A stretch of DNA of 64,000 nt from Pocillopora damicornis. Taxonomy: Eukaryota. The stretch lies in assembly GCF_003704095.1 (NCBI RefSeq), contig NW_020845547.1:248001-312000 (forward strand), read 5' to 3'. The translations under genes and the position numbers were made by a program. How positions within the stretch are numbered: position 1 is the stretch's first letter; every line of letters starts with the position of its first letter. The notes under the pieces were generated by a model. It made no database searches and was not told the DNA's origin. It saw only the letters and a program-made list of their open reading frames with translations. Positions 28,573-63,455 of this stretch are shown here, piece after piece.

Positions 28573-31425
28573 ATGGCGTCCATCTTAGGGCCATCGAAGG
28601 AAAAAACTAACGGTACCAAGTTAGCGCGACTGCTAATTGATGGCGGTACACAAGCGCTCAGGAACGTGATGGAGTCTTTCATACATCCGCCTTCAACACT
28701 GCAAATTATGTTAAACAACAACAAGGCGACCCTCGCCAACTTAAAGAGCAGACGTAAATTATATGATAGCCAGTGGGAAAAACTTTTTCCTCCATCGGGT
28801 GGCCCACCAGACGTAAACACATTTGATATCACTCTTCTACATTTACTGCTTCGTGAAATCTGTCCCGCTTTGATTGAACCTGCCACAGGATGGCACGAAA
28901 TGCCGGCAAAAACAGATCACAGTCGTGAAGCAGAGATCGTCCGGATTAAATGCTTGCGAAACAGCCTGTGTCATAGCATTTCCACCGGTGTTCCTAATGG
29001 CGAGTTTGAAGACAAATGGAATACAATTTCTCACTCTTTAGTAACCTTAGGACTCGATCAACTAGAAATAAACCGCCAAAAAACCGAAGACATCGATCAT
29101 GGTACACAGCGACGAGTCGAAGAAGAAGTGGAGAAATGGAAACTTGACATCGAACCGAGAGTGCAGACCTTAGAGTACGAAGTACAGCAGCTAAAAGTTG
29201 GGCGAATTTCAAGTAATGAACAGCCCATTTCAGAGGTGAGTGGGTCTTTTGAGCTTCTCAGTTGTCTTCCAGATGAGGTTCAAGATGTGTTTGGCCGCTC
29301 GAATGAAATTCAACGAGCTGTAAAATTGATTCAAAGCGGAACAGTCTCCATAGTTTCCTTAACTGGTGGACCGGGCTTCGGGAAGACCACTATGGCCAAC
29401 AAAGTGGCCCACGAGCTTGCCAGACGCGAAAACAGCCGAAGTGTGTTATATTGCTCACTAACATTCCAATCATCACTAAACGACATATTTACCAAAATGA
29501 TTCTTACCTGCAGCAAAGGCCTTTCTCAGCCGCCAGAGCATCCCAAACACTGGCTTCTGAACTGGAGCAAACAGCAATCTAGGAAAGTCACATTGATACT
29601 AGACAATGCAGATCGTGTCCTCGAGTCTGATGATCGAAAGCAGTTTGTTGACATGTTACGCGAAATGAGGACCTTGTCAAGCCAAAATCTAACTTTTATT
29701 ACTACGTCTAGAAAAATAGTGGATGCCCCCAGTAGTAATTCAAACATTAAAACCATTAGATTGAAGTCTCTTCCTTTGCATGAGGCAACCAAGGTTCTTC
29801 TTTCAAAGGTTGGCGATACGGAAACGAGAGAGGAGCTCTCCCAAACGGAAAAAATGATCTCACTGTGTGGTTGTGTCCCTTTAGCCCTTTGCATTGTTGG
29901 ATCTTTGCTTTCGGACTACAGAGAGGAAAAATTAATCGCAATTCTCCAAAAGAAACCTCTAGATGTTCTTCAGGACAATGATTTGTCGGTTGAAAAGGCC
30001 ATTAAGACATCATTCGATCTCTTAAGTGAAGCAGAACGAAAGGCGCTGGCAATTATGTCTGTATTTCCAGGTTCATTCGATTCGGATGCAGCTGAGGCTG
30101 TAATTACAGCTGTAATGGATTCTGAAGTTCAGCCAGTTTTGATTCTCCAATCGCTCAGAAACAGGTCTCTCTTGGAGCAGCCAAGTTCACGTAGATATGA
30201 AATTCATCAGCTTATCAGAATGTTTCTGTCGAAAGATAGTCACGCCAAGTATTCACAAGCTGTTTCTCAAGGTGAACAAGAAGCCTGTGCCCACTTCATT
30301 TGTCGACTTGCTTCCAATGCCAATATGTACTGGAGCAAAGATAAATGCAAGGAATCTGTTTTGGAATTTAGCAAAGACAGACACAACTTCGAGTATTTCT
30401 TGGAAATTTACATTCGTGATGCAGATCCTCTTCAATGTTCCACAAGTATATTTTTTGAAGACTTTCCACAAAAGTGTATGTATTTAGAAATGTGCCTTTT
30501 ACCTAACTTCTACATAAAAATTTTGGAAAAACTCTGGAAGTACTTCCACTCAGTAAGTCACCATGTTCACATCGTTGAAGTTTTGTGTCTTCTCGGACAT
30601 GAAAAGAGAAAGGTGGGCAAACTACCACAGTACAACTATCTGATGAATCTTGCCAAGGGAGTTTACTTTACCAATTACAAAGCTTTCAAAACAAACCGTT
30701 TGTCGCAAGTATATTTTTTTAATAGCTATGCCTATTTTCTTTCGGTACTAAGGCTTCCCAGTCGATCGGAAATGGTCTCCAAAGTCTATGAAATAGCTTT
30801 AATTTTGTGCCGTAAAAACCTCAAAGAACATCCAGAGACTGCAGCTACTTTGCAGTACATTGGTCGGCATAGCAAAAGTAGGAAACATCTTCAGGATGCA
30901 ATGGACATGTCTACCCTGTGCCTCGGAGAACATTTCATGACAGCTCAGTGTCACAAAGCCATCGCAGACTCCTACTTTGGACCGTCTTTCTACGAGAGGG
31001 ATAACACAGACATGGAGAAATGCTTTGAGCATTATGGAGCTGCACTGACTTTGATGAGAAATCTTGGTGTTGGTCACCACAAGGAAAGCATTTTGACACT
31101 GAAAAACTATGGAGTTTGCTGCAAAATCAAAGGAAATTTTCAAGAAGCAATAAGTGTCCTAACCAAATCAAAACAAGTTGCTGATATTGAATTGGAGGAG
31201 GACCACAAATGGAAAGTGATGATTGAAACACAGCTGGCCCTCGTGTATGACTGCGCTGGAAATGCAGAAAAAGCGGGAAAAGTCATGAAGGAAGCTCTGA
31301 ACATGAATAAGCGCCTCAAACAGTCAATCCATTGGTTAGCAAATAAAAGAGAGATCCGGGAATTCCTGAGGCGTCATCCACAGGTTTACCACGAGCCTCT
31401 GACGAGGTGGAATTCTCGTAGTTAG
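28573..31425 (+). CDS. HEPN(DZIP3-like)-STAND NTPase (NB-ARC-like)-TPR protein, copy 1, intact, 950 aa
   Basis: FDITLLHLLLRE, TGW, RIKCLRNSLCH (R-x4-H); Walker A GGPGFGKTT; Walker B LILDNAD; FITTSR; GCVPLAL; YEIHQLIR; TPR-like repeats (EHPETA, LGEHFMTA, EDHKWKV). Confidence 0.9.
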   Translation: MASILGPSKEKTNGTKLARLLIDGGTQALRNVMESFIHPPSTLQIMLNNNKATLANLKSRRKLYDSQWEKLFPPSGGPPDVNTFDITLLHLLLREICPALIEPATGWHEMPAKTDHSREAEIVRIKCLRNSLCHSISTGVPNGEFEDKWNTISHSLVTLGLDQLEINRQKTEDIDHGTQRRVEEEVEKWKLDIEPRVQTLEYEVQQLKVGRISSNEQPISEVSGSFELLSCLPDEVQDVFGRSNEIQRAVKLIQSGTVSIVSLTGGPGFGKTTMANKVAHELARRENSRSVLYCSLTFQSSLNDIFTKMILTCSKGLSQPPEHPKHWLLNWSKQQSRKVTLILDNADRVLESDDRKQFVDMLREMRTLSSQNLTFITTSRKIVDAPSSNSNIKTIRLKSLPLHEATKVLLSKVGDTETREELSQTEKMISLCGCVPLALCIVGSLLSDYREEKLIAILQKKPLDVLQDNDLSVEKAIKTSFDLLSEAERKALAIMSVFPGSFDSDAAEAVITAVMDSEVQPVLILQSLRNRSLLEQPSSRRYEIHQLIRMFLSKDSHAKYSQAVSQGEQEACAHFICRLASNANMYWSKDKCKESVLEFSKDRHNFEYFLEIYIRDADPLQCSTSIFFEDFPQKCMYLEMCLLPNFYIKILEKLWKYFHSVSHHVHIVEVLCLLGHEKRKVGKLPQYNYLMNLAKGVYFTNYKAFKTNRLSQVYFFNSYAYFLSVLRLPSRSEMVSKVYEIALILCRKNLKEHPETAATLQYIGRHSKSRKHLQDAMDMSTLCLGEHFMTAQCHKAIADSYFGPSFYERDNTDMEKCFEHYGAALTLMRNLGVGHHKESILTLKNYGVCCKIKGNFQEAISVLTKSKQVADIELEEDHKWKVMIETQLALVYDCAGNAEKAGKVMKEALNMNKRLKQSIHWLANKREIREFLRRHPQVYHEPLTRWNSRS

Positions 31426-31849
31426 GGTTAAAGAGTGTGTCAGTACAATTATCTTGTAGTTGTTCATGAGGTCAAACAAAGGTTGTGCCTCTTTAGGCAA
31501 AGACCGTAACCTGATACAAATGAATTGTTCAAGTCTTTTTTTCGGTTTCTACTTCGCGTGAGTGAGAACTGTCTTCCTTTCGTTTAGCATAACCAATTAC
31601 CTGCTGCCGATAATTGCAGGTGTAAGTTTTAGAGATCAGTCAATAACACGGATAACCTCTTGCTTCTTTTTACTTTAATTAAAGGACTGGGTTGTTTATT
31701 GTTTCTATTTATTTCTCGTGAAGTTGAGGTATACGGACTGCTGTCAGACCGTCAGTTCTTTCCGCTGCCCCTGAACATGACTGCCTTAATTCTTAACCTG
31801 GGGCTTAAAAACAAAAGGAACCTTGTAAGTCAAATAGCTGGATAGGTGT

Positions 31850-62700: not shown

Positions 62701-63455
62701 GATATCGCTTTCCACTCGTTTTAGGAAAACCATAAGAAGAGGTTAGAAATCTAATCTTGTCACAAGGAAGCAAGCGCGTGCCGTAACTTCTAATGCAAAT
62801 TGCAAGTACCCCTTTCACTGCTTTTTTTTTTAGCCAAAAACGTGCTTCCGCACCAACTGATTACGTTGGTATTTATGATGTCAGTTAAAAAGTCAGTTTT
62901 TTACATTCCTGGACATAATGCTATGCATAAGCAGTATATTTAAACGGCTATTTCATCGTACTTATAAGTGACTTTGTATTCATTTTATTAAATTATGCGT
63001 TTTAAGGCCTTTTAAACCTCAGTTTTTTTCATTGGAAGTTAAAGGTGGCATGCTTGAAGTTCGAGCCCAGACCGGAAAGAACAACCCGAAAAAAATGATG
63101 GATTGGTCACCTGATAACGCATAGCACCTGATCTGAATTTCAACATTCTTTTATGAATAAATGTGAATAGAAACGTCTTTTATTTGTGCTTTCACCTCTT
63201 CAGGTACGCATGTCGAACTTTAGGTAAATAAAGGGCGTAAAAGGTAATTGGAGTTTATCGTGAGCTCTTTTCCCATTAATGAGAAGAAACTTGCACCCCT
63301 ATCAAATCAGTGTACCGTGATAATTCATGATGCATACTGCGCTTTTACTTTCAGGAAGTGTTGCCAGCCGAACAGGCCATCGAGTCGAACAGCCCTACTT
63401 TCCCAGAAAGTGGAAAGGTGGCTTTGGAAGAGGAAGGAATCAATCAGAGAATTGA
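59796..63455 (+). pseudogene. HEPN-STAND-TPR copy 6, full length but disabled
   Basis: 1-nt deletion giving TGA at 60276, a second frameshift at ~61670, an in-frame deletion near 62250 and a TAG at 62431. The family C-terminus continues to 62605, with a terminal exon at 63355-63455. Motifs RNELCH, GGPGFGKTT, GCVPLAL and YQMHPLIQ are retained. Confidence 0.85.

Follow-up and report, generated by a model that had tools for sequence, protein, structure and literature searches.

What does the tandem gene cluster in a 64-kb stretch of the coral Pocillopora damicornis genome encode, and which of its copies still encode it? The stretch (contig NW_020845547.1, positions 248,001 to 312,000 of the forward strand; hereafter the window, 64,000 nucleotides long, to which all coordinates refer unless a contig is named) contains six homologues of a gene that joins an N-terminal HEPN domain, a P-loop nucleoside triphosphatase (NTPase) and C-terminal tetratricopeptide repeats (TPR). 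We regard the locus as, in all likelihood, a tandem cluster of coral NLR-like paralogues that is old, syntenic and shaped by birth-and-death evolution. Still more confidently, we assign it to the published class of DZIP3-like HEPN/NB-ARC/TPR proteins. Copies 1 and 2 are intact and transcribed, copies 3 and 6 are decayed, and copies 4 and 5 cannot be judged through assembly gaps.

Six homologues in tandem, two of them complete

A tblastn search of the window with the two long open reading frames (ORFs) as queries gave six homologues, all on the + strand between 28573 and 62604, and no homologue of the cluster genes upstream of 28573. A first-pass annotation of this DNA had listed six same-strand paralogues that share one architecture in a nearly intronless coding sequence, in an array reaching to 63455. 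The number, the strand and the single-exon structure (for copies 1 and 2) agree with our results. The span does not, as homology stops at 62604, and the common architecture holds for copies 1 and 2, which have the full layout, but not for copy 3 (HEPN lost), copies 4 and 5 (gaps) or copy 6 (disabled). In a search of the genome (234.35-Mb assembly, 4393 contigs), a seventh member was found 7 kb past the window (C2182:319166-321136). It consists of HEPN residues 1–115 and residues ~440–940 with a 100-N gap between them, and the scaffold ends 3 kb farther on. The assembly is a short-read draft (PMC6208414), with three gaps in the cluster region. The lengths of these gaps are estimates, so that the reading frame across them carries no meaning. 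The GC content is about 37–43% across the cluster.

Copy 1 (28573..31425, +) is an intact single ORF of 950 aa, with HEPN_DZIP3 at residues 40–181, the NB-ARC NTPase at ~236–600 and TPR at ~700–920. Its motifs are located at 28957-28974 (RNSLCH), 29365-29391 (Walker A), 29593-29613 (LILDNAD), 29698-29712 (ITTSR), 29869-29889 (GCVPLAL) and 30193-30216 (RYEIHQLI), all on the + strand. Database relatives are a 99% identical protein in ENA, also of 950 aa, an 81% identical Stylophora pistillata orthologue, and then many scleractinian proteins. Copy 2 (33525..36350, +) is likewise an intact single ORF, of 941 aa, with the same three domains; RNDLSH is found at 33939-33956, Walker A at 34287-34313, FVLDHAD at 34515-34535, ITTRK at 34623-34637, GFVPLAL at 34785-34805 and RYQLHSLI at 35109-35132 (+). 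No intron was found within either coding sequence: the ORF length of copy 1 equals that of its 99% identical relative, and RNA contigs are colinear with the genome.

Of copy 3, the last third of the HEPN domain, from about residue 120, is left as a remnant (46659..46808, +) that keeps RNELFH and contains an in-frame stop; no HEPN homology was found farther upstream of it. The ORF that follows (46815..48968, +; 717 aa) encodes NTPase and TPR only, with a C-terminus about 50 aa short. Copy 3 thus appears to be either a HEPN-less variant or a pseudogene. The 10-kb spacer between copies 2 and 3 carries non-coding direct repeats (39200-46600), with periods of ~0.85, 2.3 and 3.3 kb and 61–92% identity. 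They reach the truncated 5′ end of copy 3, so their expansion may have removed its HEPN head.

Copy 4 (53456..55445, +) is an open frame of 663 aa that encodes HEPN and NTPase and is cut off by the gap at 55446-55545, past which no TPR homology was detected. Copy 5 consists of two fragments: the first (55889..56538, +) encodes HEPN and linker (residues 1–~210) up to the gap at 56539-57130, and the second (57132..57287, +) encodes 52 aa of the ARC/GLPL region on a 156-nt island flanked by two gaps. The fragments are in different frames, which is meaningless across gaps of estimated length. Copy 6 (59796..62604, +) is colinear with copy 2 over its full length. It changes frame at ~60275/60284 and at 61672/61675 and has an in-frame TAG (62431-62433) at a place where its paralogues read on; with these three lesions it is a probable pseudogene. 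Introns were considered for the two frame changes and rejected, since each of them lacks no more than two to four codons.

Copies 4 and 5 are 90–95% identical in DNA, including the 116 nt directly after the gap and about 340 nt of upstream non-coding DNA. This likeness points to a young duplicate, or to one gene whose two haplotypes were placed in tandem by scaffolding. In its strongest form the latter idea would make the array of six largely a product of assembly artefact and decay, with copies 1 and 2 the only genes, copies 4 and 5 haplotypes of one gene and the rest pseudogenes. The mere gap between copies 4 and 5, the three gaps in a short-read draft and the disabling lesions in copies 3 and 6 fit such a reading. 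However, a divergence of 5–10% is high for alleles, several neighbouring copies are also present in another coral assembly, and tandem arrays are the rule for the family (PMC10236652, PMC9646362). We find this reading rather doubtful; even so, it would alter the copy count and not the identity of the genes.

The two intact copies are transcribed

RNA contigs were placed on the stretch from 28353 to 34352; they give neither strand nor expression level. About half of the sequence words of this stretch are present in RNA libraries of at least four studies. Contigs of four polyA or cDNA runs, from four studies, cover copy 1 colinearly from 28490 to ~31800. Copy 2 is covered from 33434 on, and one RNA contig of 2844 nt extends past the end of the stretch. 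Between the two genes contig depth falls to zero in all four runs (32153-32352) and stays low up to 33152. Coverage therefore tracks the gene boundaries, which argues for transcription and not for DNA carry-over. Being single-exon, intact and transcribed, copies 1 and 2 are suitable first test cases. Expression values for the orthogroup to which we compare the cluster below, OG0000193, are tabulated in PMC10236652.

A candidate 5′ untranslated intron of copy 2 (32763..32899, +; GT..AG, 137 nt) is indicated by RNA contigs with the joint 32762>32900, from two runs that belong to different studies. Depth is low there, and we tentatively consider the intron likely.

Just downstream of copy 1 (31855-32060) lies an interspersed repeat of ~210 nt, for which a first look at the genome gave more than 4600 candidates at 85–91% identity. 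It accounts for the very high RNA depth at 31753-32152 (thousands in all four runs). This is probably an element of the SINE or MITE-like kind that many transcripts contain.

The NTPase is of the NB-ARC type

The first-pass annotation had read the proteins as a DZIP3-like HEPN domain, an NB-ARC-type P-loop NTPase and C-terminal TPR, and all three assignments agree with Pfam. For the NTPase, the Pfam NB-ARC model (cut-off 23.5 bits) scored 47.4 bits in copy 1, 49.7 in copy 2, 31.8 in copy 4, 39.8 in copy 6 and a marginal 24.2 in copy 3. It is the top STAND model in copies 1, 2 and 6, above NPHP3_N (28–37 bits), NACHT (~29) and several nSTAND models. In copy 4 it ties with nSTAND_NTPase5 (31.3 bits), and in copy 3 it is outscored by NPHP3_N (36.0) and four other P-loop or STAND models, including NACHT (28.6). 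The motifs are those of NB-ARC proteins, one residue of Walker B excepted: GGPGFGKTT, LILDNAD or FVLDHAD, ITTSR or ITTRK, GxVPLAL and RY[QE]xHxLI, with a TTR-like sensor I, a GLPL-like and an MHD-like element. Every motif named beforehand (FGR, GGPGFGKTT, LD[N/H]AD, TT[S/R][R/K], GxVP[L/Q]AL and RY[Q/E]xHxLI) was recovered by a motif scan and an alignment of all pieces.

Comparison with solved structures, whose ranking is taken here in place of a tree of reference STANDs, gave the same answer. With copy 1 as a single query, the best match in the PDB was Streptomyces AfsR (E 3e-11), with plant NLRs next. A profile built from 46 members of the family matched NRC4 (3e-18), NRC3, NRC2, AfsR (8e-16), Roq1, Sr35 and Apaf-1 (9e-9). 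The AlphaFold model of copy 1 residues 220–630 (pLDDT, the model's confidence measure, 90) matched in fold NRC3 (4e-13), the wheat G10 resistosome (5e-13), Apaf-1 (1e-11) and CED-4 (1e-11), with NRC4, ZAR1, Roq1 and Sr35 also among the matches (E 4e-13 to 1e-10, TM 0.6–0.67).

A NACHT-type NLR was considered and rejected: the NACHT model is barely above its cut-off (~29 versus 26.7 bits) and below NB-ARC in every copy but copy 3. No NACHT protein was present among the listed PDB profile matches or the top 50 fold matches. Neither NACHT nor Avs proteins being found among the listed profile matches and the top 50 fold matches, and with TTR-like, GLPL-like and MHD-like motifs present, the NTPase is firmly of the NB-ARC type.

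A DZIP3-like HEPN head and a TPR end

The N-terminal domain matched HEPN_DZIP3 (Pfam PF18738, cut-off 27 bits) with 171–177 bits in copies 1, 2 and 4 and 137 bits in the piece from copy 6 (E-values 2e-50 to 3e-52). In the alignment of all pieces, each of the six HEPN parts, the remnant of copy 3 among them, has the RNxxxH motif, as RN[SDE]L[CSF]H. In an alignment of 48 diverse family members, R129, N130 and H134 (copy 1 numbering) are each at least 90% conserved. A phmmer search with residues 1–215 of copy 1 against 1.84 billion representative sequences retrieved 1634 clusters at E ≤ 0.001, many of them short HEPN-only proteins and many long multidomain proteins.

The HEPN model is all-helical (pLDDT 93). 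Single-sequence and profile searches of the PDB found no solved HEPN chain. In an exhaustive VIA-align search of the PDB with the model, the top match was Csm6 (Z 6.8) and the next the AbiF dimer (Z 6.1). HEPN proteins made up about 12 of the top 50, among them two more Csm6 structures, Cas13, HepS, the sacsin HEPN, Swt1, LsoA, 1wwp and 2hsb; since helical bundles often reach Z values of this size, this enrichment is supportive and not conclusive. The identification as a DZIP3-like HEPN domain is accordingly strong by Pfam, modest by fold comparison.

At the other end, TPR_12 matched C-terminal positions with 39–70 bits in Pfam. The C-terminal third of the 46-member profile found kinesin light chain TPRs in the PDB (2.5e-12), so that the repeats are of the kinesin-light-chain type.

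The cluster is old and its TPR end diverges fastest

Between the intact or open copies, the ratio of nonsynonymous to synonymous substitution rates (dN/dS) was 0.12–0.21, estimated for HEPN, the nucleotide-binding domain (NBD) and ARC wherever dS was estimable. Copies 3 and 6 are each other's closest relatives (dS 0.36–0.55), and their higher dN/dS of 0.31–0.35 is as expected for decaying copies. The paralogues are of old origin and evolve under purifying selection.

A Neurensin/TMEM74 gene (14195-14932, +; single-exon ORF, 245 aa, Pfam E 7e-24) lies upstream of the cluster. In the other coral assembly, the Neurensin gene (L003:7043-7783) is followed 2.2 kb downstream by a 64% identical HEPN/NB-ARC/TPR gene, and then by more genes of this kind. 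The shared position downstream of Neurensin indicates that the cluster is old and syntenically conserved.

Elsewhere in the P. damicornis genome there are more than 40 HEPN_DZIP3 matches, and further full-length HEPN/NB-ARC/TPR paralogues (C2378:56038-58881 and C1145:131403-134207). HEPN_DZIP3 matches are found on C3384, C2883, C4004, C612, C4043, C2493, C2891 and further contigs, often several per contig; some of their frames are very long (1479–1674 aa), and dozens are short and HEPN-only (~220–360 aa).

Per-domain identity was used as the measure of divergence; dS is saturated for most paralogue pairs. In comparisons with orthologues and paralogues of other corals, conservation is usually highest in HEPN and lowest at the TPR end. 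With the Stylophora protein P0023, for example, identity is 76–77% in HEPN and NBD and 38% in the TPR part. The fast divergence of the TPR part suggests sensor diversification or exchange.

These observations bear on whether the genes have an immune role at all. They could instead encode regulatory STAND/TPR scaffolds for housekeeping, like NPHP3 or kinesin-light-chain-type TPR proteins, a reading to which the secondary Pfam matches (NPHP3_N, TPR_NPHP3), the kinship of the TPRs with kinesin light chain and the expression in unchallenged field and laboratory samples would be congenial. Yet NPHP3_N scores below NB-ARC in copies 1, 2 and 6 (above it in copy 3), and the family combines lineage-specific expansion and birth-and-death in tandem with a sensor end that evolves fast and a nuclease-type head, traits usual in conflict genes and not in housekeeping ones (PMC10236652). 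A housekeeping role is, on this evidence, very improbable.

Relation to known systems

The HEPN family of DZIP3/hRUL138 was defined by Anantharaman 2013 (PMC3710099), who listed animal proteins in which it is fused to TPR, NACHT, DEATH or LRR, noted lineage-specific expansions in Nematostella and oyster, and proposed roles in RNase-based defence or apoptosis. Emery 2021 (PMC8260672) found that in anthozoans, P. damicornis among them, the DZIP3-like HEPN is the partner most often joined to NACHT. In the pearl oyster, Takeuchi 2022 (PMC9646362) reported HEPN-NACHT genes in tandem arrays, with LRR, TPR or WD40 ends and a conserved Rx4H; Rx4-6H is kept in 194 of 202 members there, and RNA degradation is proposed as the role. 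Finally, Noel 2023 (Genome Biol, PMC10236652) listed OG0000193 as a coral-amplified class of NLR or innate immune receptor and stressed its tandem duplication, giving counts and domain strings but no mechanism, per-locus anatomy or experiment.

OG0000193 has the same three-domain composition and tandem amplification as the cluster, a match made by domain string and not by gene identifiers, and shows no structural difference from it. The first-pass annotation had presented the cluster type as lacking a functional description; its novelty was overstated, as the architecture, the tandem amplification and the idea of an RNase effector have all been published (PMC3710099, PMC9646362, PMC10236652). 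The locus is thus an ordinary member of a known, uncharacterised class, and no experiment on any member is reported in the papers found. What the present analysis adds is the anatomy of the locus copy by copy, the firm NB-ARC assignment and the finding of two single-exon copies that are intact and transcribed.

The DZIP3-like HEPN-NACHT-LRR, -WD40 and -TPR proteins of cnidarians and bivalves have in common with the cluster the HEPN family, Rx4H, the tripartite layout, tandem arrays and a proposed role as RNase effectors. They differ in that most are fused to NACHT, whereas the proteins described here have an NB-ARC (AP-ATPase) domain with TTR, GLPL and MHD-like motifs, and TPR. Apaf-1, CED-4 and the plant resistosomes (NRC2/3/4, ZAR1, Sr35, Roq1) share with copy 1, by profile and fold, the NBD-HD1-WHD module, and oligomerisation driven by nucleotide would be expected to follow their model. 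They couple a CARD, CC or TIR effector to a WD40 or LRR sensor; in the present proteins the effector would be HEPN, the sensor TPR, and Walker B reads D-N/H-A-D. Streptomyces AfsR (SARP family) combines NB-ARC with C-terminal TPR, as here, but activates transcription in a bacterium, has a DNA-binding domain at its N-terminus and lacks HEPN.

The cluster had also been called Avs-like. In bacterial Avs proteins a single chain carries the effector enzyme at its N-terminus, then the STAND NTPase and the TPR-like sensor, and copies 1 and 2 have the same order (HEPN, NB-ARC, TPR), so that the analogy of layout stands, as a likeness of design only. In Avs, target binding leads to oligomerisation and effector activation (PMC13581612); the proteins sense phage proteins, and the well-studied effectors are mostly DNases and similar enzymes. 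Membership of the Avs family was rejected: PADLOC gave weak, generic P-loop matches and no Avs model, and no Avs chain was present in the PDB profile or fold matches.

A built-in ribonuclease is possible

How might such a protein work? The kinesin-light-chain-type TPR solenoid would hold an ADP-bound NB-ARC module closed. Binding of a ligand, such as a protein derived from a pathogen, a symbiont or a danger signal, would release the module, and nucleotide exchange would then drive oligomerisation, as in Apaf-1, CED-4 and the plant resistosomes. The N-terminal HEPN domains would thereby be brought together into composite Rx4H RNase sites, and these could cut cellular or viral RNA and so shut off translation or kill the cell. 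All of these steps, from ligand sensing through oligomerisation and HEPN pairing to RNase activity, are ones that we infer, as is the immune role, and we hold the complete mechanism tentatively, as a serious possibility somewhat short of an even chance. Slightly more tentative is the specific proposal that copies 1 and 2 encode ligand-gated, oligomerisation-activated ribonucleases for antiviral defence, symbiont control or allorecognition.

Such a one-chain sensor, switch and RNase had been proposed in the first-pass annotation. The tripartite layout, the conserved Rx4H and Walker A motifs, the transcription of copies 1 and 2 and the purifying selection are in line with that proposal, while RNase activity, pairing and sensing stay predictions. 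Oligomerisation-activated HEPN RNases (Csm6, RNase L/Ire1 KEN, Cas13, AbiF) also have Rx4-6H and an alpha-helical core. The relation of the HEPN domain studied here to Csm6, AbiF and the others is nevertheless remote (7–12% identity, Z < 8), the regulatory domains differ, and activity here is predicted.

Several points weigh against the account given here, of the locus and of its mechanism. A Foldseek comparison of the HEPN model with the PDB gave no significant match, and the VIA-align matches were modest, every Z being below 8, as is normal for helical bundles. The papers found report no demonstrated RNase activity for any member of the DZIP3-like HEPN family. In the Walker B motif, D-N/H-A-D, the aspartate is followed by N or H instead of D or E, and the acidic residue is at +3. 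A second acidic residue (hhhhDD) is typical of NB-ARC Walker B motifs, and an acidic residue at +3 is found in NACHT; with the second acidic residue replaced, hydrolysis may be slow or altered. The evidence for transcription comes from library contigs that lack strand and level information, from unchallenged field and laboratory samples. Lastly, copies 3 to 6 are broken or incomplete, and the complete architecture is seen in copies 1 and 2 alone. A prediction of the HEPN homodimer (score 0.01) weighs neither for nor against pairing.

The HEPN domain could, alternatively, be an RNA-binding or homotypic adaptor and not a nuclease, the STAND oligomer recruiting partners as CARD and death domains do in Apaf-1 and NLRs. 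The modest fold likeness to catalytic HEPNs and the want of a reported RNase activity just mentioned would suit an adaptor. Noel et al. label the domain 'RNA-binding' (PMC10236652), and the dozens of short ORFs with HEPN_DZIP3 only could supply its partners. Set against this is the conservation of the motif: R, N and H of RNxxxH are kept in every copy and in at least 90% of the 48 members, and the Rx4-6H count in the oyster (PMC9646362) tells the same way. Such conservation is expected of a catalytic site rather than of a mere scaffold, and we judge an adaptor unlikely.

If the ribonuclease mechanism is true, these are animal NB-ARC receptors that carry an enzyme effector in their own chain; bacterial Avs-type STANDs have been shown to work in this way, animal NLRs so far have not. 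Its demonstration would mean that NLR-type receptors of early-branching animals kill or silence directly, through a built-in nuclease. It would also connect animal immunity with the logic of bacterial STAND defence, with consequences for coral disease and symbiosis.

Sequence around the copies

None of the ten intergenic ORFs between the copies has a Pfam match, and hence there is no sign of a transposase or of other genes inside the cluster.

Palindromes resembling GAS elements (TTCNNNGAA) precede each of the five copies whose 5′ end is present: ten were seen in five regions of 800 nt, for 4.2 expected. The upstream sites are located in 27800-28570, 33320-33365, 53160-53335, 55720-55770 and 59430-59730. 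This enrichment is weak and confounded by paralogy, since the copies are not independent. An NF-kB-like site, GGA[A/G]ATTTCC, is present at about −130 of copies 4 and 5 only, and ISRE-like sites (GAAANNGAAA) were seen upstream of copies 4 and 6.

Two weak Rfam tRNA matches adjoin assembly gaps, at 15994-16066 (−; 37.5 bits) and 18581-18654 (+; 30.9 bits). ARAGORN calls neither of the two, and they may be tRNA-derived repeats.

Outside the cluster, a fragment of a rhodopsin-type G-protein-coupled receptor (7tm_1, E 3e-5) lies at 26173-26787 (−), and a short Skp1_POZ-like ORF (E 1e-6) at 717-1037 (+). Both are probably exons or remnants of neighbouring genes.

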